From Macrostomum lignano (taxonomy: Eukaryota): a DNA stretch of 30,841 nt. Each line of letters starts with the position of its first letter. The stretch's first letter is position 1. Of the stretch, positions 1 through 29,248 are shown piece by piece. The DNA lies in assembly GCA_002269645.1 (NCBI GenBank), contig NIVC01003644.1:1-30841 (forward strand), in the 5' to 3' direction. A program made the position numbers and the translations under genes. The notes beneath the pieces were generated by a model. The model saw nothing but the letters and a program-made list of their open reading frames with translations, made no database searches and had not been told where the DNA came from.

Positions 1-178
1 GAGGAGAGTGTGAGGGAGAGAGTGAGGGAGAGTGTGAGGGAGAGTGAGGGGAGGAGTTAGGAGAGTGTGAGGGAGAGTGAGGGGATGTGGGGAGAGTGAG
101 GGAGAGAGTTAGGGAGAGTGTGAGGGAGAGTGTGAGGGGAGAGAGTGAGGAGAGAGTGAGGGAGAGTGTGAGGGAGAT
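1..178. repeat. GA/GT-rich degenerate microsatellite (GAGAGTGTGAGG-like)
   Basis: Read directly from the sequence; runs off the left edge of the window. Confidence 0.9.
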
Positions 179-780
179 TTGCATTTTAGCACCCCAAACA
201 CAAGTTTCCAGCTACTAGTGCCAAGCAGGCAAATCTTATGTGAAACAGTGCAATAACTATTCATAATGCAGCTCCAAGGCACTTAGTCATTTATTTCGTA
301 AGGCTTACCCAAATGCAGAAACTCACACTAGTACAGCGCTTTCAGTAAATTTTATTGATTTCAAAGAGGGTCTTGGAATAGTTGAATTGTTCTCAAGTCG
401 GTGCTTTAGCCTGCCATTGTCACATGACTTGCTTCTATAAAATTGCTTTAATGAGGGCGGAGTACCCTGATTAATAATCTTTCAGTTATATACTTGTACA
501 TTCACTGCTCACCTTCCTCCCCTGCCCGTTGCCTTCGCTAACTGCAACTCCCTGCCCGGTCACGCGCGGGTGGTGAATTTGAATTGAAAATGCGTCAGTG
601 GAAGCGCTACCAGTCGATTTCTGTACTTAAGTACTTTTAAATTATGCTGTGTTTATGCACTCTATGCAGCTTGTTTTACTACTGACTCAGTAGCTTAAGT
701 TCAAAACAGAATTTTAATGCAAACTGTGATCAACCCGCCAGAATATTTGGAGAATAACAGATTTCTTAACCGAAAAATTT

Positions 781-952
781 CACTGGTTTCACACCTCCAT
801 GACCCGATCTGTCATATTCTATGACCCTATGACCTGGAAAATTTCACCTTTTATGACCCTAAATTTCATATTCTATGACCCAGACAATTTTACCCTCTGT
901 GACCCTAAATGCCATATTCTATGACCCGGACAGTTTCACCCTCCATGACCCG
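781..952. repeat. Degenerate tandem repeat with (C/T)ATGACCC core
   Basis: About 8 occurrences of TGACC(C) at ~20-25 bp spacing; CATATTCTATGACCC occurs three times. Confidence 0.7.
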
Positions 953-978
953 AAAATATCGGCCGCCGCTCATTTCAG

Positions 979-1289
979 AGGTCCGCCCAGCTGTCGGAGG
1001 CCCTCAGACAAGCCGGCTTCGTGCCCAACAAAGTTCGAACCCACTTCGTATTTGCCGAAGTACTCAAATCCATGTGGTCAAGGTTCGGGTTCAGCTTCAC
1101 AGGAAATTTCACGAAGGCTGGGGCTACAATCTCTACGCTATGAACGGACGTCCCGGGTTCGATTCCGGCGTTTCCTGCCGGTACATCTATCAGGACCTGG
1201 TGGTCACTTTGAGGACTGTCAGTGCCCGAATCGGGACAACCTCATCTGCTATATCTCGGAGCAGACTGGCTCTCTGCAGCTCAGCAAAG
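979..1289 (+). CDS. Gene 1 exon with N-terminal NTase-like signature (spans three frames)
   Basis: TTTCAG acceptor at 978 and G|GTTTCC donor at 1290. Phase 1 joins exon 1836 as QLSK-V-PIMKRMGL. GC3-rich codons switch frame at ~1106 and ~1205. Confidence 0.6.
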
Positions 1290-4200
1290 GTTTCCACAGC
1301 TTTTATTGTCTTTTAGTTTAACTTTTTAGGAAAGCCTTATGCAAGCCATTGTGGTCTTCCAGATCCCACAGTTTCCTCCAGAGTGTCTTCCAGACTCCAA
1401 AATGCTTTATAGAGATCCCACAGAGTCCTCCAGATCCACAGTGTCCTCCGGACCCCACAGAGTCCTCCAGACCCCACAGAGTCCTTCAGACCCCAACAAT
1501 GTCCTCCAGACCCCACAGAGTCCTCCAGACCCACAGAGTCCTCCAGACCCCACAGAGTCCTTCAGACCCCAACAATGTCCTCCAGACCCCACAGAGTCCT
1601 CCAGACCCCACAGAGTCCTTCAGACCCCAACAATGTCCTCCAGACCCCACAGAGTCCTCCAGACCCCACAGAGTCCTTCAGACCCCAACAATGTCCTCCA
1701 GACCCCCAGAGTCCTTCAGACCCCAACAATGTCCTCCAGACAGATCCATCAGCTCGCTTTACATTGACTGAAGTGGTCTCTGAAGTCGAGATGCAACTCA
1801 GAGATCCCAATTGCTTGTATGAATTTCAGCTTTAGTCCCAATCATGAAGCGGATGGGCCTGGTTGTCAACATGGACGGCGAAGTGCTCGACCTTGAAAGG
1901 ACTCAAAGCATTAAGCATAAGCGTGAGTTTGCTAATAATGCTTGAAAACTGATGAGTCACTTTTGTAGTCCCTTACGTCTTACTGTAGCTCATGATATCC
2001 TACTGTAGCTCCTGACATCCTACTGTAGCTCATGATATCATACTGTAGCTCATGACATCCTATTGTAGCTCATGACATCCTATTGTAGCTCATGACATCC
2101 TATTGTAGTTCATGACATCCTACTGTAGCTCATGATATCCTACTGTAGCTCATGATATCCTACTGTAGCTCATGATATCCTACTGTAGCTCATGATATCC
2201 TACTGTATCTCATGATATCCTACTGTAGCTCATGATATCCTACTGTAGCTCATGACATCCTACTGTAGCTCATGATATCCTACTGTAGCTCATGATATCC
2301 TACTGTAGCTCATGATATCCTACTGTAGCTCATGATATCCTACTGTAGCTCATGATATCCTACTGTAGCTCATGATATCCTACTGTAGCTCATGACATCC
2401 TACTGTAGCTCATGATATCCTACTGTAGCTCATGATATCCTACTGTAGCTCATGATATCCTACTGTAGCTCATGACATCCTACTGTAGCTCATGACATCC
2501 TACTGTAGCTCATGACATCCTACATGACAGACTACATGACATGATAGCCCAAGCAGTGCTGTGACACCCTATTTACCTGACACAATTCCTGACAGACTAC
2601 ATCCGCTGACAGCTGACACTGTACTTGTTAAGCTGCTCCAACTCCTAGAGTATTCTGACATTTCAATGTTCGCAAACTGCAGGAATCGCATCAACCCAAC
2701 CACCAGCGGTGACCCTCCTCCTTTCCGCAGTGACCCTCTCCCCCGCAGTGACCCTCTCCCCCCCGCAGTGATCCTCTCCCCCCCCGCAGTGACCATCTCC
2801 CCCCGCAGTGACCCTCTCCCCGCAGTGACCTGACCTCTCCCCCGCAGTGACCCTCTCCCCCCCCCCGCAGTGACCCTCTACCCCCGCAGTGACCCTCTCC
2901 CCCCCCGCAGTGACCCTCTACCCCCGCAGTGACCCTCTCCCCCCCCCCCGCAGTGACCCTCTCCCCCCGCAGTGGTCCTCTCCCCCCGCAGTGATCCTCT
3001 CCCCCCGCAGTGACCCTCTCCCGCAGCTCGGCCAACCCGGAGGTTCTGTTCACCGAGCAGCTGGCCTGCTGCCCCATTTCACTCGGCGTGCCGTGAGCTC
3101 CTTGCAGCGCCTGCCCGGAGACTGGCAGGCGGACGCCGCGCAGATCACCATCCGGCCCCGCACGTACGTTCAGCACCTGCAGCAGTCGGGCTTGAAGAAC
3201 TCCGAGCCAGCAGCCGATGTGGACTTCTCCGGCCTGGAGAGGGCGCTGTTCTGCCGCGTGGGTGAGGCTAGCGGCCACCTGTACATGCTGCTGAAGTACC
3301 TGCTGTTGAGAGCGCTGCCGCAGGCGTTGCCGGACAAGATTCGCCCGTTCACGGAGGTGCACTGCCGCCAGCTGCTGTGGTACATCATCAGCCGCGAGCA
3401 CCGAAACTACATTGGCGATGGCGAATCGTTGCTGAGCCGCGGACGTCGGGGCCTTCAGCTGATGGCGGAGCTTCTGGAACATCAGCAGCAGCTGCAGCAG
3501 CGCCTGCAGAAAGGCAACTCGCAGCGGAACGTCGCTTTTCGAAACTTCTTTGACCAGCGCCTCGGCGTGCCGTTCGACGAGGCGGTCGTGGGGCTGGTGG
3601 ACGCGCGCTTCTGTGCCGCCTGCTGAGCAACCCGACTCGCCTGCTCACCGACCAGGTGGACGCGTACATCTCTCGGCTGCGCGGCCTCGGCAACTTCAGC
3701 AGCGGCGGCGGCGGCGGTGGCGGCCTGAGCGGCTCTTATTTCGTGTTCCGGCCGCTGCTCATGACCATCCCGGGCTGCAGCAGCGCGGCGGCGAGCCGCC
3801 CGACAGCCAGCCAACTCGCTGGGCTCGCCGACTACCCCATGGTTGGATTTCGGCTGTACCGAGCGCTGGACATCCTGCTGGACGAGTGTCGGCCCGACCA
3901 GGGCATTTCGGCGGAGTTCAGCGCCCTGATTAGCAGTCTGAGGCGGTGCGCCACCACGGCCGCCGCCTGCTTGAGCTGCATGATGGCGCTGAAGCTGCGG
4001 CAGGGAGCGGGGCTGGCGCACCAGACTCTGATGCAGGCTGGACAAATCTCCGTGACGGACTGCTTCGAGGTGAATCAGCCTGACTGAGGCGGTCCTACGG
4101 GTCCGGGTGTCCATGGTGATCGTCCCTAAGTTGCAAATTTCCTGAAGTCTTGAATTCCCGGAGCCATAAAGTCCCGAAGTCATAAAAGTCCCGAAGTCAT

Positions 4201-7042
4201 AAAAGTCCCGAAGTCATAAAAGTCCCGAAGTCATAAAAAGTCCCGAAGTCATAAAAGTCCCGAAGTCATAAAAGTCCCGAAGTCATAAAAGTCCCGAAGT
4301 CAAAAGTCCCGAAGTCATAAAAGTCCCGAAGTCATAAAAGTCCGAAGTCATAAAAGTCCTAAAGTCATAGAAGTCCCGAAGTCATAAAAGTCCAAAAGTC
4401 ATAAAAGTCCCGAAGTCATAATAGTCCCGAAGTCATAAAAGTCCCGCGGAAGTCATAAAAGTCCTAAAGTCATAGAAGTCCCGAAGTCATAAAAGTCACG
4501 AAGTCAGAAAGGTCCCGATGTCATAATAGTCCCGAAGTCATAAAAGTCCCGCGGAAGTCATAAAAGTCCTAAAGTCATAGAAGTCCCGAAGTCATAAAAG
4601 TCACGAAGTTAGAAAGGTCCCGATGTCATAATAGTCCCGAAGTCATAAAAGTCCCGCGGAAGTCATAAAAGTCCAAAAGTCATAGAAGTCCCGAAGTCAT
4701 AAAAGTCCCGAAGTCATAAAAGTCCCGAAGTCATAAAAGTCCCGAAGTCATAAAAGTCCCGAAGTCATAAAAGTCCCGCGGAAGTCATAAAAGTCCAAAA
4801 GTCATAGAAGTCCCGAAGTCATAATAGTCCCGAAGTCACTAAAGTCCCGAAGTCATTAAAATCCTGAAAATTCAGCCGTACCCCAATTATCCACTCCACA
4901 CCGCTCAGGCTTCCAACCTGACGCCAAGTATGGTTGAGAACGCCCTGCTCAAGACTGACTGCGCCTGGCTCTACCGCTGCAAGCTGATTAAGGATGAGCA
5001 CGAGGACCACGTGACCGAATGTCACGGACCCGGCGGCACGGCCTTCCTGGCCGCCTACCCCGGATCCGCTGCCTGTTTTTCCCGGCCACCCAGAAGCCGA
5101 TTCTGCACAGTCAGCACTGCAGCTTCGTCTACCGGCTGCGCATCAACTTTGTGGCGCTGTGGCATTCGCTGAACACCCAGCTGGCCAGCGACTTGGGCAG
5201 CTACATCAGGCCGAGCTACGGAGCTTCAGCTGGCGGCGGCGGCCCGGAGTCCAAGAGCCAGTTGACCACCCGGATGCTGCTGGACCAGCCCGACTCGGTG
5301 ATGGATCCGCAGGAAATTGTAGCGCAGGTCTGCAAACTCAGAAACCCAACTCACCTCAACTTGGTGCCGAAATTCCCCGGCTCGATTCCGCAGCATGAGC
5401 ACGTTTAGAGAGCCACAAAATTTTTAGCAAACCTAATTCCGAGTACATGTGTGCTCATGTGTGCTCATGTGTGCTCATGTGTACTCATGTGTGCTCATGT
5501 GTGCTCATGTGTGCTCATGTGTGCTCATGTGTACTCATGTGTACTCATGTGTGCTCATGTGTGCTCATGTGTGCTCATGTGTGCTCATGTGTGCTCATGT
5601 GTGCTCATGTGTGCTCATGTGTGCTCATGTGTGCTCATGTGTGCTCATGTGTGCTCATGTGTGCTCATGTGTGCTCATGTGTGCTCATGTGTGCTCATGT
5701 GTGCTCATGTGTGCTCATGTGTGCTCATGTGTGCTCATGTGTGCTCATGTGTGTTTATGTGTGCTCATGTGTGTTTATGTGTGCTCATGTGTGCTCATGT
5801 GTGTTTATGTGTGATCATGCGTGCTCATGTGTGCTCATGTGTGCTCATGTGTGTTTATGTGTGCTCATGTGTGCTCATGTGTTCTCATGTGTTCTCATGT
5901 ATGTTTGTGTGCTCATGTGTGCTCATGTGTGCTCATGTGTACTCATGTGTCCTCATGTGTGCTCGTGTGCTCGGTATCAGCGAAATGATCTAGCGTACGA
6001 TTAATTACCACCCAGGTGCTGATAAGACAGCCCACCACCCTCACCCACTCACCCAGGTGTAGATAAGACAGCCCACCACCTCACCCACTCACCCAGGTGT
6101 AGATAAGACAGCCCACCACCTCACCCACTCACCCAGGTGTAGATAAGACAGCCCACCACCTCACCCACTCACCCAGGTGTAGATAAGACAGCCCACCACC
6201 TCACCCACTCACCCAGGTGTAGATAAGACAGCCCACCACCTCACCCACTCACCCAGGTGTAGATAAGACAGCCCACCACCTCACCCACTCACCCAGGTGC
6301 TGATCTGCTCCAGCTCGCCCAGTCGCCGGCTCCTGCTCAGCGCATTCAAAGCTCTGGTGACCGGAGCAGCGCCATTCCATCGCGAGCGCGGCCGAGACGA
6401 GTGGCGCTGGCTGAACCTGGTCCGGCTGCACCTGATGGGCACCTGGCTGACTGAGCTGAGGACTTCGCCAGGCGGTAATAGAAGCCAGCGCGAAGACTTC
6501 TGCGAGCTGGTTTCCTGGTGCAACGAGTACGACGAGCTCTTCCACTGCTCAATCGCGGGCTGTGGCGTCTCCGCCATGCTGCACACGGTCGGGTCAGCGG
6601 CCGAGGTTCAGGCGCGGTCGGTGCTGCAGTCGGTGCTGGAGACCGAGATAGAGCAGGTAATTATGCTGGGCTTTCTGATTTGTATTTAGATATGGCCGTC
6701 GATAAATTTTATTTAAAACAGTTTTTCACTACCAATAAAAGTACATTCCCCAAAGGTCATCTTAAAAAAAGCACTTAGAAATAGTATATACTACTCATAA
6801 AAACATATTTCAGAAAAGTTCTGTAAAAACTAGTACAAATCAGTGCCAATCAAATGTCAATGCAGCCAGTAACGACTGACCCAGGCATCGAATTCCTCCA
6901 AAACCCGCAGATTTTCCCCCTGACAAAGGAAGCTGGCCACGATCGTGACCTACTGGTGATGGAGCTCTACGCCAGGTACTCTTCCGACAAAAAGTCCAGG
7001 GCGCACTTTGAAAAACGCGCAAAACAGCTGGCCTCTCATTGA
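979..7042 (+). CDS. Gene 1: Mab-21 / cGAS-like receptor (cGLR)-type nucleotidyltransferase-fold protein, ~800 aa, spliced, 5' end not located
   Basis: Proposed exons 979-1289, 1836-1922, 2683-2708 (phase unresolved), 3027-4069, 4909-5327, 6297-6656, 6866-7042, all GT-AG. After correcting 1-nt deletions (~1106, ~1205, ~3093, ~3605, ~5060) it reads LSEALRQAGF...FTG(N/K)FHEGWGYNL...GFDSGVS...HFEDCQC, then DFSGLERALF...YMLLKYL...LLWY...NFF...LLSNPTRLL. These match my recollection of Mab-21 family patterns (GS-x-x-EG, SFS-x-x-E-x-x-L, Y-x-LLK, L-x-NP). Family call is by eye, with no HMM run. Confidence 0.65.
1362..1742. repeat. Minisatellite, 19/20-bp units (CCAGACCCCACAGAGTCCT, TCAGACCCCAACAATGTCCT) in ~58-bp higher-order blocks; intron of gene 1
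   Basis: Read directly; explains ORFs 1337-1835. Confidence 0.95.
1981..2520. repeat. 20-bp minisatellite TACTGTAGCTCATGA(T/C)ATCC x27
   Basis: Exact 20-bp periodicity over 540 bp. Confidence 0.98.
2709..3026. repeat. ~18-bp C-rich minisatellite GTGACCCTCTCCCCCGCA filling a whole intron
   Basis: The array begins at the GT donor and ends at the CAG acceptor. Confidence 0.93.
3027..4069 (+). CDS. Gene 1 large exon with Mab-21 C-terminal lobe motifs
   Basis: ORFs 2889-3626 and 3656-4087 join if one G is restored at ~3605 (VDAALLCRLLSNP). The 5' part reads SANPEVLFTEQLACCPISLGVP and joins if one G is restored at ~3093. Donor GAG|GTGAAT at 4070. Confidence 0.75.
4165..4860. repeat. 17-bp minisatellite AAGTCATAAAAGTCCCG, ~40 copies
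   Basis: Read directly; lies in the intron after exon 3027-4069. Confidence 0.97.
5445..5968. repeat. 10-bp satellite GTGCTCATGT, ~52 copies
   Basis: Read directly; explains the MCAHVCSCVL ORFs. Confidence 0.98.
6011..6296. repeat. 40-bp minisatellite x7 (CCCAGGTGTAGATAAGACAGCCCACCACCTCACCCACTCA) abutting the exon at 6297
   Basis: Near-identical head-to-tail units with no spacers. Confidence 0.97.
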
Positions 7043-7220
7043 TCCCGTCTTATTAGTGCTTGTAGACCGTTTTTTGTTATTTCTCCTGATTTTTCAAAGA
7101 GCTGTCTTACTCAGTAACTGGCCCCTCCTAACAAGTACTTTACAAGTCATTGATATTTGTGAAACAATTTGCAACTATGGTGCTGTTTTAACTAGGAGTA
7201 TTAGATACCTATTTTAATTC

Positions 7221-7411
7221 AGTGAGACACCTGTCTTCTCATGATAGTGAGACACCTGTCTTCTCATGATAGTGAGACACCTGTCTTCTCATAATAGTGA
7301 GACACCTGTCTTCTCATGATAGTGAGACATCTGTATCTTCTCATGATAGTGAGACACCTGTCTTCTCATGATAGTGAGACACCTGTCTTCTCATGATAGT
7401 GAGACACCTGT
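7221..7411. repeat. 25-bp minisatellite AGTGAGACACCTGTCTTCTCATGAT x~7.5, 3' of gene 1
   Basis: Read directly. Confidence 0.95.
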
Positions 7412-7439
7412 CGGTAAAATTGTCAGCCTATCAGCTCTG

Positions 7440-7500
7440 CCCTGCCCGGTGCGGTGCGCTGATTGGCTGGGCTTGGCTCTCGTGTCTCTCCCCCCTCTTC
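7440..7500. promoter_or_regulatory. Possible promoter element (reverse CCAAT box CTGATTGGCT in a GC-rich patch)
   Basis: Motif only, in intergenic position between gene 1 and gene 2; no expression data. Confidence 0.2.
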
Positions 7501-7657
7501 CCCCATAATTTATTATTTTATCTGCTCTGGTGCCGTGTGGCGGTCTTAACACTACCAATAAACAGTTTAAAACAATTGTAACATTTAAACTCAGTAATGA
7601 ATAGCAGCACTACTAAGTATAAAACCAGTTATGCTCTGTCTCCAGTGTTTCTTTGCT

Positions 7658-8638
7658 GATAATTATTGTCAGCTTGTCCCAGTGTCAGACTAGGGGATAA
7701 TTAAATTGTCAGCTTGTCCCAGTGTCAGACTAGGGGATAATTATTGTCAGCTTGTCCCAGTGTCAGACTAGGGGATAATTATTGTCAGCTTGTCCCAGTG
7801 TCAGACTGGGGGGATAATTATTGTCAGCTTGTCCCAATGTCAGACTTGGGGATAATTATTGTCAGCTTGTCCCAGTGTCAGACTGGGGGGATAATTATTG
7901 TCAGCTTGTCCCAATGTCAGACTTGGGGATAATTATTGTCAACTTGTCCCAGTGTCAGACTTGTGGATAATTTTTGTCAGCTTGTCCCAGTGTCAGACTT
8001 GGGGATAATTTTTGTCAGCTTGTCCCAGTGTCAGACTGGGGGATAATTATTGTCAGCTTGTCCCAGTGTCAGACTTGTGGATAATTTTTGTCAGCTTGTT
8101 CCAGTGTCAGACTGGGGGATAATTATTGTCAGCTTGTCCCAATGTCAGACTTGAGGATAATTATTGTCAGCTTGTCCCAGTGTCAGACTTGGGGATAATT
8201 ATTGTCAGCTTGTCCCAATGTCAGACTAGGGATAATTATTTTCAGCTTGTCCAGTGTCAGACTTGGGATAATTAAATTGTCAGCTTGTCCCAGTGTCAGA
8301 CTAGGGGATAATTATTGTCAGCTTGTCCCAATGTCAGACTTGGGGATAATTATTGTCAGCTTGTCCCAATGTCAGACTGGGGAGGATAATTATTGCCAGC
8401 TTGTCCCAGTGTCAGACTGGGGGGGATAATTATTGTCAGCTTGTCCCAGTGTCAGACTGGGGGAGGATAATTATTGTCAGCTTGCCCCAGTGTCAGACTG
8501 GGGGAGGATAATTATTGTCAGCTTGTCCCAGTGTCAGACTTGGGGATAATTATTGTCAGCTTGTCCCAGTGTCAGACTTGGGGATAATTTTTGTCAGCTT
8601 GTCCCAGTGTCAGACTGGGGGAGGATAATTATTGTCAG
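7658..8638. repeat. ~38-bp minisatellite GATAATTATTGTCAGCTTGTCCCAGTGTCAGACT(T/A/G)GGG, ~25 copies
   Basis: Read directly; the G-run length varies between units. Confidence 0.97.
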
Positions 8639-8803
8639 CATTTCCCAACACCAGGCTCATACATCTCGAAACACTAATCATACTTCCCATAGTACGGTGC
8701 TGGGAACTTGAACGCTCATCTAAGGGATTGTCCGCAACTTGAGATGAAGACCAGATCTAAGTGCGGAGGCTGAGTGAGGGGAATTTTCTCTTCCCCTCTG
8801 TAG

Positions 8804-9220
8804 TCGCGATAAAGTTCCTCACCGCGGCTTTTTGCCCGTGGCACCCAATGGACTGCGACACGCACAGCACACATGCACACAGTGCACTCCAAACTTGGCG
8901 TACCTGAGCTCCGGCTTATGCCTTTATAAACTTCCTGAACTCCCTGTTTGAGCTTCTTGGACGGCTCAGAAGCCAACTCAGCTGAGCCATTATATATCTA
9001 AGGCGACTCAAGCGATGAATCACAAAGTCTCCGCTTTGCAACTGGATCAACTCAAAATTGGCGAGAGATTCTTTGAGCAGTTGATGTTGCAACACCAGCA
9101 ACAGCAGCAGTGCTTCCGGTCTCAGCTGCTGATGACGGTTGAGCCTGGGAAAGGCGGCAGCGACATCGGCGACAGAGACTGCGTGACGCACTTGAACGAG
9201 AAGGTGGTGCGATTTCAGGA
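8804..9220 (+). CDS. Gene 2 internal exon, unknown product (frame broken at ~8915 and ~8980)
   Basis: Polypyrimidine-TAG acceptor at 8803 and strong GA|GTAAGT donor at 9221. ORF 9015-9224 extends upstream as ...AFINFLNSLFELLGRLRSQL-QLSHYISKATQAMNHK... with 1-nt corrections. No recognisable family. Confidence 0.45.
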
Positions 9221-9281
9221 GTAAGTATCTAGTACTGACTGCTTTTATTTGGGTATTGGTTTCAGCTGCTTGTAAGAGTAG

Positions 9282-10138
<857 letters not shown>

Positions 10139-10393
10139 TTTTTCGATAGATAAGGAACACTCTGCCTAACCCTACTGTTAGTAGTAGTCTGAACACTCGG
10201 GTCATTTTTCAGATTCTTTACCAATTAGGCTGCAATTTAAATTCAAACGGTATTTCATCCCTATATATTGGTCTCTAGAAGCAATGCATAGATAAAAAAC
10301 GTACATCTCGCGGCTTCTACTGCTTAGAAACAGTGAAGTAGACAGCTGTACTCAGCTGAGGCCTGTGCTGTTTCTCTAGTATTTTCTGCTCAG

Positions 10394-10792: not shown

Positions 10793-27674
<16,882 letters not shown>

Positions 27675-29248
27675 GCCCCCGCCCGATGGCGATTTATGAT
27701 CGGAAAATTTGAAAACTGTTCAACTTATTAAGTTAGCACAAAGATAAACAAATTCGTTGTTTCTTATGGAAAACAAAGACTCATGCAACTCTTCATTCGT
27801 CGCTTTGATTTACGTAGTATTACGTAGTAAAAGCCATTGCGTAGTTGGATTCGTCAGTTCTATTTTTTTTCTCAAAAGTTTAGTGTAAACCACAAATACT
27901 AGAATGGCTAGATGGGTCACTCAGCACATTTTCGTGTAAGCTACTTTCAGTTCAGTAGTAAGGTAAACAGAAGCATTTTAATGTATTTTTTAAGCCAAGG
28001 CTCATTTAATTGGCTCTTACCCCGCCCCCCCCCCCCGGCTTAAAACCCGCGGCCCTCCAAACGCACCGTTCCACACTAACCCCCACCCCAATTTTTATTG
28101 CCTTTCTCGGAATTCCAGCCTAAAGCTGCCATGTACATTTCAGTGGACTGGCTAATGTACATTACTGCTGAACCAATTAGCAAGCTGTTTGCGCCTGCAA
28201 GCTTCTAAAATTATCAACGTTATTTCAGCTGCCTCTATTTTTATAAAATAGCTTATGTATTCTTCTTTGCTACTGAACTGAAAGTAGGAAGCTAAGTATT
28301 TTGCCAAGTATTTATGCCTGAGTGGCCCATCTAGTTGTTTTAGTTTCTGTGGAATAAACCAGGCTGGAAATGTTCTGATCTTCCTACACGTATTCTAGAT
28401 TTTATAATACGAGCGCTCGTAGAACCAAATTAACTGATATATATTTTCCAGAAACTAAACGCCTTCTAGGCCTATTTTTTATTTAAAATAAAATACCTAT
28501 CAGTTTTTTTACTTAACATCTGCTTCTAATCGCCCTTTGAAGTTTATGTACCTGTTAAATTCCTAGCTGTATTACATTATCGACTGCACAGCAAAAATTG
28601 AAAGGGAAATTGAGACGTTCATGTGTCTCCTTTTTCTCATACCAACGACTTTATCATTGTTAGCTCGTATTCTCCGCACCACGTGAATTGAGTTATTTCA
28701 ATAAGTACGCGAGTATGATCAATATACCTTACACAGGTCTTGCATGTATAATTCCAGAGCTTAGCATCGATCTACGTCACATTCGGCATTACATGTACAT
28801 GTACAAATAATGCATATCTCAAGGACCACTAGAAGATTCTACTTAAGTAGTCCATGGCATATCTCTGGGCAGACAGGCCTGCCCTGTACTAGAAATGCTA
28901 GACCGCCAAATAATATTATTACCTAACTAAATCAACTAATCGAAATTTAGGAAGTACTACATGTACTTCTCATGCTGCCACACAAATTAGTTTATGTTTC
29001 TGTTATGTCCGACATGACGCTTCTTTTATTTTTACCGGAAGTTTTCTTCGGTTTTCTCGACATTAAAATGCTCATGTAAAAAAGCTTCGTTAAAGAAGAT
29101 CGCCATGTAAAACATAAAAGAAGCAGAGCCGTTCAAAAATCAAAGTCTGTGAAACAAGGAAAAGCATATTTTAAAAGACTTGCCCTTTTGCCCTTTTATT
29201 GCATGGAAATTCGCAAGCAGCGAAGCGGACAGGCAGGAGTTACAGCGG

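Follow-up and report, generated by a model that had tools for sequence, protein, structure and literature searches.

A putative pseudo-enzyme of the cGAS-like receptor family encoded by Mlig015656 of Macrostomum lignano

The question raised by the DNA analyzed here is whether a member of the cGAS-like receptor (cGLR) family whose catalytic residues appear to be lost is nevertheless encoded by an intact gene, and what such a protein might do. The window, which is the whole stretch of 30,841 nucleotides (nt) of contig NIVC01003644.1 of the free-living flatworm Macrostomum lignano, contains an exon at positions 979-1289, for which a preliminary description made from the letters had proposed a cGLR/Mab-21 protein with a dead catalytic centre. 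We found that this exon is exon 2 of the gene Mlig015656g2, and that the encoded protein is probably a pseudo-enzyme, with a predicted cGAS-like fold in which the residues of the catalytic centre are replaced.

The exon at 979-1289 on the plus strand has its AG acceptor at 977-978 and its GT donor at 1290-1291. In the window the exon 2 peptide is spread over three successive frames, ...SAQLSEALRQAGFVPNKVRTHFVFAEVLKSMWSRFGFSFTGNF, (K)FHEGWGYNLYAMNGRPGFDSGVSCRYIYQDLVV and HFEDCQCPNRDNLICYISEQTGSLQLSK, and the corrected exon 2 protein sequence, obtained by alignment to contig NIVC01000033.1 of assembly GCA_002269645.1, is FSFTGNFTEGWGY...FDSGVSC...HFEDCQC. The peptide was recovered at the coordinates and on the strand given earlier, with DSGVS at 1161-1175 free of any frameshift and H-F-E-D-C-Q-C at 1205-1225. 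When the conceptual protein composed of exon 2 and the downstream open frames was compared with PAA93089.1, the M. lignano hypothetical protein BOX15_Mlig015656g2 of 844 amino acids, the two were 97% identical over 99% of the length. The intact locus of Mlig015656g2 is located on NIVC01000033.1, where a 7-exon model with GT-AG at every intron gives a translation exactly equal to PAA93089.1. The window carries exons 2-7, and exon 1 (amino acids 1-52) falls outside it, about 560-710 nt before its first position. Exon 2 is 311 nt long in the window and 313 nt in NIVC01000033.1. The protein, hereafter Mlig015656, consists of a short proline-rich N-terminus, a nucleotidyltransferase (NTase) domain at about amino acids 50-470 and a C-terminal extension of about 370 amino acids. 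The exons in the window are as follows.

979-1289, plus strand: exon 2, amino acids 53-157; N-lobe of the NTase core with the spine helix, β1, the G-N loop, β2 with DSGVS, and H-x3-C-x-C
1830-1922, plus strand: exon 3, amino acids 157-188; most of an insertion of about 22 amino acids restricted to two dead clades
3011-4069, plus strand: exon 4, amino acids 188-541; third-Asp strand and helix bundle of the C-lobe, then the beginning of the family-specific C-terminal extension
4909-5327, plus strand: exon 5, amino acids 542-681; C-terminal extension common to ankyrin-type paralogues
6297-6656, plus strand: exon 6, amino acids 682-801
6911-7042, plus strand: exon 7, amino acids 802-844; stop codon at 7040-7042

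Upstream of exon 4, positions 2725-3022 are occupied by copies of a 19-nt unit, CCGCAGTGACCCTCTCCCC, in which a CAG comes after a pyrimidine tract. The acceptor in use (3008-3010) is the last copy of this unit, so that about 15 potential 3' splice sites lie in a row at the end of the intron.

When 1.84 billion representative proteins were searched exhaustively with HMMER, 16 matches were obtained, all of which (16/16) were from M. lignano, and the exon region comprising amino acids 38-137 matched paralogues with E-values down to 1e-17. The BOX15_Mlig024291g1 group (P0006/P0019/P0020, including the near-identical copies Mlig029778g1 and Mlig031884g1) shows 30-34% identity over about 600 residues. 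The remaining matches are proteins of 660-1350 amino acids with N-terminal ankyrin repeats, whose domain aligned to query residues 40-140. These ankyrin-type paralogues contain a Pfam Mab-21_C match about 200 residues past the query-like domain, which scores above the gathering threshold in P0007, P0010 and P0012, and some of them have two NTase-type domains in tandem. In P0007 and P0009 we observed two complete cGLR-type domains with ankyrin repeats between them, G-S and D-I-D being intact in both. It has been known that ankyrin-cGLR and multi-cGLR fusions occur as architectures of this kind (PMC9980059). In a profile search of a 5.8-billion-protein collection, the only entries found were four near-identical ones from M. 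lignano, the candidates being probably limited by the word-index step of the search.

The cGLRs that were cloned for a biochemical screen are given in Supplement 3 of Li et al. 2023 (PMC9980059), where M. lignano entries appear from #89 onward, with five BOX15 mentions and with accessions that include PAA86972.1, PAA45980.1 and PAA57558.1. Two M. lignano sequences from this supplement align with the Mlig015656 family. The ankyrin-type paralogues thus already figure as predicted cGLRs in a published catalogue. Judged from the sequences retrieved, the Mlig015656 family is found only in M. lignano, and most of its members carry ankyrin repeats together with a complete cGLR active-site motif. Mlig015656 is without ankyrin repeats and keeps the family-specific C-terminal extension. 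As for existing names, the UniProt entry of the alternative model P0002 is called 'Mab-21 domain-containing protein', and the UniProt A0A1I8... models of Mlig015656 and its sister gene (P0003-P0005, P0021, P0022 and P0035-P0037), which stem from a different M. lignano annotation, are garbled or fused. The unrelated names on A0A1I8... models (reverse transcriptase, RING-type E3, RUN domain, gamma-tubulin complex component, ANF receptor and SWIM-type) are untrustworthy and probably arose when predictions on an error-rich assembly were frameshifted or merged.

We then compared the motifs of 30 family domains, including 24 of the ankyrin type, two of which are Li et al. sequences. The alignment of Mlig015656 with its paralogues from G94 to S118 is gap-free, with F, E-G-W-G, N/L, G, R and S in common. 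The motifs of the three groups are as follows.

Ankyrin-type domains (24/24): G-S loop, G-S; acidic pair, [ED]-[SA]-D-[IV]-D; third Asp, P-x-x-D; G-H motif, G-H
Mlig015656: G-S loop, G-N; acidic pair, D-S-G-V-S; third Asp, P-E-V-L; G-H motif, G-S
BOX15_Mlig024291g1 (P0006) group: G-S loop, G-N; acidic pair, D-S-A-L-T; third Asp, P-A-L-S; G-H motif, G-S

The replaced positions of Mlig015656 are found in the window at the following sites.

1102-1107, plus strand: G94-N95 at the G-S loop position; Ser replaced by Asn
1161-1175, plus strand: D114-S-G116-V-S118 at the position of [ED]-S-D-[IV]-D; Gly and Ser stand in place of the two metal-binding Asp residues
3037-3048, plus strand: P197-E-V-L200 at the position of P-[AS]-x-D; third catalytic Asp replaced by Leu

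The dead catalytic centre proposed earlier is borne out by this comparison, in which the paralogues have G-S and [ED]-S-D-[IV]-D at the same gap-free positions where Mlig015656 has G-N and D-S-G-V-S, and correction of the sequence did not restore D-x-D, since the corrected sequence still reads DSGVS. Residue 95, which had been given as N or K, is N and not K in the corrected sequence, and the residue after G-N-F, which had been read as H, is T (TGNFTEGWGY). Because hhalign puts the third Asp of cGAS 3 residues past L200, at E203 of Mlig015656, the register of the third acid is somewhat uncertain, unlike the loss of the acidic pair, which is clear from the aligned sequences. Li et al. described the cGLR motif as h[QT]GS - X8-20 - [DE]h[DE]h - X50-90 - h[DE]h (PMC9980059), and Mlig015656 departs from it at every element (T-G-N, D-S-G-V-S and P-E-V-L), while the ankyrin-type paralogues follow it with G-S, 20 residues, D-[IV]-D-h, about 55 residues and P-x-x-D. 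Outside this published motif, we observed that the G-H dipeptide, which is invariant in all ankyrin-type domains, is G-S in both dead clades (G150-S151 of Mlig015656, at about 1268-1273), and the His may be part of the active site or the ligand site of the family.

The C-lobe motifs had been described as intact. They are recognisable, but they are degenerate at positions conserved in both cGAS and the active-type paralogues.

3213-3230, plus strand: A-D-V-D-F-S, corresponding to W-R-L-S-F-S of cGAS and L-R-V-S-[TF]-S of the paralogues; the Arg and the first Ser both replaced by Asp
3348-3371, plus strand: F-T-E-V-H-C-R-Q, corresponding to S-S-Y-H-V-K-T of cGAS and K-[ST]-Y-H-A-K-T of the paralogues; the conserved Tyr replaced by Val

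In structures of cGAS, the nucleotide pocket has the Arg, Ser and Tyr residues of these motifs along its walls, so that nucleotide binding by Mlig015656 would also be unlikely. A nucleotide-binding role therefore appears less likely than a scaffold or decoy role.

Next, we examined the relationship of the family to the cGAS/Mab-21 fold. A family profile of the NTase domain plus the extension matched only cGAS and Sp-cGLR1 in the PDB, with an E-value of about 1e-5, and a 15-sequence core profile matched Sp-cGLR1 (4.7e-8), cGAS (8e-8) and MAB21L1 (0.057), with nothing unrelated being significant. When the family was aligned by hhalign to a five-sequence cGAS/cGLR alignment, made from sequences in the supplement of PMC9980059, the probability was 96% and the E-value 4.6e-9, and the aligned part took in the C-lobe, with the W-R-L-S-F-S, S-Y-H-V-K-T and Y-F-I-P motifs, as well as the third-Asp strand. 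AlphaFold2 models were made for amino acids 50-734, with a predicted local distance difference test score (pLDDT) of 57 and a predicted template modelling score (pTM) of 0.61, and for amino acids 50-474, with a pLDDT of 63 and a pTM of 0.72. In Foldseek searches of the PDB with both models, among the matches listed, all were cGAS, MAB21L1, MB21D2, Cv- or Sp-cGLR1, bacterial CD-NTase or OAS, with about 400 aligned columns and template modelling (TM) scores, normalised to the target, that reached 0.58. MAB21L1 was among the best of these matches and the OAS fold among the weaker ones. The models predict the order helix-helix-β1-loop-β2, with G94-N95 in the loop after β1 and G116/S118 at the start of β2. 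In these models of moderate confidence, this placement corresponds to the positions of the G-S loop and the acidic pair in a cGAS-type fold. With respect to the definition of cGLRs by Li et al. 2023, homology to the listed M. lignano cGLRs is seen over the whole domain, the C-lobe and the third-Asp strand aligning to cGAS/cGLR profiles, and structural homology to cGLR/CD-NTase enzymes is predicted by AlphaFold2 at only moderate model confidence. The cGLR/Mab-21 identity given in the preliminary description is thus upheld through family profiles, hhalign, AlphaFold/Foldseek and the Mab-21_C match of the paralogues, but not through a direct Pfam match.

The family also shares a His/Cys cluster, which had been suggested as a metal site.

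1205-1225, plus strand: H129-x3-C133-x-C135, part of the family-conserved His/Cys cluster; candidate structural metal site with C208
3067-3072, plus strand: C207-C208; C208 invariant in the family and candidate fourth metal ligand

H129, C133, C135 and C208 are kept in 28-30 of the 30 family domains, dead ones included, and this family-wide conservation of the H...C-x-C cluster supports a candidate metal site. The paralogue P0018 has a C-x2-C...C-x2-C insertion in a loop of the cluster. The zinc thumb of cGAS is a Zn-binding H-x5-CC-x6-C insertion after the third-Asp strand, and the cluster of Mlig015656 differs from it in location, lying between β2 and the third-Asp strand.

In a neighbour-joining tree based on 347 columns, Mlig015656 and the Mlig024291g1 (P0006) group formed a clade in 100% of 200 bootstraps. 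Mlig015656 is 32% identical to this group and about 20% identical to the ankyrin-type members. Both dead clades have G-N, G-S in place of G-H, no ankyrin repeats and the insertion of about 22 amino acids. Since the dead clades group together and have these features in common, the sequences suggest a single old inactivation event before the two dead lineages split, after which long open reading frames (ORFs) of 844-885 amino acids would have been kept in both. A second genomic copy, Mlig015656g1 (PAA67708.1, contig NIVC01001461.1), is identical to g2 at 840 of 844 residues, and between the coding sequences we counted 11 single changes, 8 of them synonymous and 3 non-synonymous, and one double change, with a ratio of non-synonymous to synonymous differences (pN/pS) of 0.12 (binomial p = 0.001 against neutrality). 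Based on the two intact copies and the pN/pS of about 0.12, the comparison identifies Mlig015656 as a maintained gene and no pseudogene; the numbers are small and the direction is clear. The three hallmarks of a pseudo-enzyme, namely a retained fold, lost catalytic residues and maintenance of the gene by selection, were all found for Mlig015656 at the level of coding sequences and predicted structure.

The two copies differ in other respects as well. The last intron is about 10.4 kb in g1 (NIVC01001461.1, 8203-18617) and 254 nt in g2 (window 6657-6910), and at the nucleotide level exons 1-4 are 100% identical between the copies, whereas exons 5-7 differ by 0.5-2.3%. This step in divergence suggests a gene conversion or recombination boundary within the gene.

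The fold evidence and the replacement of every hallmark catalytic residue support the pseudo-enzyme proposed in the preliminary description, as far as sequence and predicted models can tell. We suggest that Mlig015656 is probably a pseudo-enzyme which synthesizes no second messenger and acts by binding; it would most likely bind the ankyrin-type cGLRs or their ligand, in the manner of a partner, scaffold or competitor. It would keep the cGAS-like fold without the residues for two-metal nucleotidyl transfer, and it may act on the ankyrin-type cGLR paralogues or on their ligand by binding instead of by making a nucleotide second messenger. This model seems the most economical, because the C-terminal extension and the His/Cys cluster are kept while the ankyrin module and the conserved C-lobe motifs are lost. 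Human OASL, which accompanies active OAS enzymes, would be a comparable case (PMC9859756). It is rather doubtful, yet conceivable, that the two ankyrin-less dead clades are old, selected cGLR-derived regulators of the Macrostomum ankyrin-type sensors; such regulation might proceed by hetero-oligomerisation through the common C-terminal extension, or by competition for the activating ligand.

Here, we need to consider several points that weigh against these suggestions. First, neither Mlig015656, nor its alternative models P0002 and P0004, nor the exon pieces matched Pfam Mab-21 (PF03281) or Mab-21_C (PF20266) up to E = 10. Second, neither a search of the PDB with an N-lobe-only profile nor an hhalign comparison of the N-lobe with the cGAS/cGLR alignment gave any similarity, and because of this the catalytic positions (G94-N95 and G116/S118) are assigned from the gap-free paralogue alignment, the Li et al. 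motif and low-confidence models. Third, the selection test on g1 and g2 is based on just 11 substitutions. Fourth, the 'Note' column that marks active enzymes is empty in the M. lignano entries seen in the list of PMC9980059, and since no activity is noted there, the 'active' ankyrin-type paralogues are to be taken as predicted enzymes only. Finally, the decoy or scaffold mechanism is a hypothesis.

Among other explanations, Mlig015656 could be a pseudo-enzyme with a role unconnected to its cGLR paralogues, serving as a structural adaptor, in the way that MiD49/MiD51 serve mitochondrial fission and MAB21L1/2 serve development. It has been known that MiD51/MiD49 and MAB21L1/2 have the Mab-21/cGAS fold, that no NTase activity was found for them, and that they are adaptors or nucleotide-binding proteins (PMC3926961, PMC4897736). 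MiD51 (PMC3926961) and MAB21L1 (PMC4897736) are well-documented cases of a dead or seemingly inactive Mab-21 fold serving a non-immune purpose, and the age of the dead clade (32% identity between its branches), its loss of the ankyrin module and its gain of a clade-specific insertion would be consistent with a changed job. On the other hand, the whole C-terminal extension and the His/Cys cluster are still shared with the ankyrin-type paralogues, the family is confined to a single lineage, which is typical of fast-evolving defence genes rather than of core cell biology, and no localisation signal was noticed in Mlig015656. The known adaptors are also different in nature, being conserved across animals and non-immune, and MiD51 and MAB21L1 bind nucleotides, unlike Mlig015656 with its degenerate cGAS nucleotide-pocket motifs and lineage-restricted family. 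Based on these observations, we regard an unconnected adaptor role as unlikely but worth keeping in mind.

It would be considerably less likely that Mlig015656 is still an enzyme that uses non-canonical residues such as D114 and E203. D114, two positions before the lost Asp pair, is D or E in nearly all members including the dead ones, and E203 stands at the position where hhalign puts the Asp of cGAS. However, the Ser and the three acids are replaced differently in the dead clades (G/S/L and A/T/S), as if constraint had been lost, the sister clade has Q and not E at the +3 position, and the R-x-S-x-S and Y-H-x-K-T motifs are degenerate as well. Alanine substitution of the equivalent Glu/Asp pair abolishes the activity of cGAS, which also counts against this explanation.

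A further question is whether the copy in the window is a decaying pseudogene with genuine frameshifts, for which its five frameshifts inside a coding sequence of 2.4 kb would speak. When window positions 3-9000 were aligned to contig NIVC01000033.1, the identity was 98.8%, with 8 mismatches, 5 of them within one tandem repeat, and 38 gaps, 33 of which are deletions in the window; only 3 substitutions fell outside tandem repeats over these 9 kb. Counted over positions 1-9000, the window showed 33 deletions and 6 insertions, mostly of 1 nt in homopolymers. Five deletions are exonic (1112, 1204, 3072, 3602 and 5058) and correspond exactly to the five frame changes seen by tblastn. All five are of 1 nt and lie in G/C or T runs, and in the introns and flanks such deletions are about as frequent. 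Once the five are set aside, the exon translations of the window are identical to PAA93089.1.

1112, plus strand: artefactual frameshift 1; 1-nt deletion, with C missing after 1112
1204, plus strand: artefactual frameshift 2; 1-nt deletion, with T missing
3072 and 3602, plus strand: artefactual frameshifts in exon 4; 1-nt deletions
5058, plus strand: artefactual frameshift in exon 5; 1-nt deletion

The two 1-nt corrections within exon 2 that had been called for at the outset match the deletions at 1112 and 1204. Because the same type of deletion occurs in the non-coding DNA and the ORF is intact in NIVC01000033.1, the frameshifts are long-read homopolymer errors of the window's assembly, and Mlig015656g2 itself is intact. 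With the exact intact ORF in the polished assembly, and a second intact copy showing the pN/pS of 0.12, decay of the gene is very improbable. The indel pattern of positions 1-9000, with about one indel per 230 nt, probably extends to the whole window, in which homopolymer deletions break the ORFs about once per 250 nt, and apparent frameshifts or pseudogenes here are unreliable at face value.

The idea that Mlig015656 lacks the Mab-21/cGAS fold and resembles its motifs by chance, which could appeal to the missing Pfam match, the empty N-lobe profile and a single-sequence search of PDB sequences that returned nothing relevant, can practically be dismissed in view of the full-length homology to paralogues bearing Mab-21_C, the match of the family profile to cGAS/cGLR at an E-value of about 5e-8, the hhalign result and the listed Foldseek matches of one fold only.

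Comparison of Mlig015656 with known systems revealed both likenesses and differences. The ankyrin-repeat cGLRs (PAA86972.1, PAA45980.1 and PAA57558.1; P0007-P0018) have the NTase core in common with it at about 20% identity over about 350 columns, together with the G-F-x-x-x-R spine helix, E-G-W-G after the G-S loop, the H...C-x-C...C cluster, and the C-lobe and C-terminal extension of about 250-370 amino acids. Mlig015656 differs from them in its lack of ankyrin repeats, its replaced G-S, D-x-D and third Asp, the change of G-H to G-S, its degenerate C-lobe motifs and the insertion of about 22 amino acids. Mlig024291g1, Mlig029778g1 and Mlig031884g1 resemble Mlig015656 in the proline-rich N-terminus, the absence of ankyrin repeats, G-N, the insertion and the loss of the three acids, but they have A-L-T and S where Mlig015656 has G-V-S and L, and the sequences are highly diverged. 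Compared with vertebrate cGAS, Mlig015656 shows a bilobed fold, C-lobe motifs that can be aligned (hhalign 96%) and a His/Cys cluster, while it differs in an identity of about 12%, the dead centre and the extra C-terminal extension. Human OASL, which has been described as 'devoid of enzymatic function' (PMC9859756), and the inactive OAS2/OAS3 domains are like Mlig015656 in being inactive members of a synthase family that stand beside active paralogues in an innate-immune family. OASL is unlike Mlig015656 in belonging to another branch of the NTase superfamily and in having ubiquitin-like domains. Catalytically dead members of NTase sensor families are already known, and Mlig015656 has been deposited as a hypothetical protein. 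A literature search for the Mlig015656 gene identifier found no paper, and a full-text search found no paper naming both cGLRs and pseudo-enzymes. The cGLR catalogue of Li et al. 2023 was limited to proteins with complete active sites (PMC9980059), and because of this requirement inactive relatives such as Mlig015656 were filtered out by design.

The rest of the window was also examined. Most introns and intergenic stretches contain minisatellite or microsatellite arrays, each a different one, whose periods range from 4 to 40 nt and whose copy numbers reach 215, and tandem repeats make up a large share of the non-coding DNA of the window. Arrays are found at 1413-1741, 1981-2523, 2725-3022, 4156-4868, 5446-5969, 6009-6299, 7221-7412, 7658-8647, 9279-10139, 10913-11341, 11722-12960, 13300-14135, 14357-15025, 15490-16545, 17276-17783, 18377-18715, 19934-20615, 22445-22758, 26129-26496 and 27034-27242. 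At about 19000-27700 on the plus strand there is an apparent multi-exon gene for a long charged coiled-coil protein, which gave no significant Pfam match.

19006-19899, 20677-20880, 20967-21155, 23177-23476, 24648-24959, 25523-25840 and 27351-27674, plus strand: ORFs of the coiled-coil gene

Mlig015656 illustrates that an expanded lineage-specific cGLR family can hold old, conserved and dead members, as the OAS family holds OASL. If the two dead clades were indeed regulators of the ankyrin-type sensors, this would be the first described pseudo-enzyme regulator in the cGLR signalling of invertebrates, and this in a phylum from which cGLRs are said to be largely gone, and regulation of active sensors by dead members would add an extra layer of control to this signalling. 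M. lignano is a flatworm that is kept and manipulated in the laboratory, and its dead family members are open to study by RNA interference.

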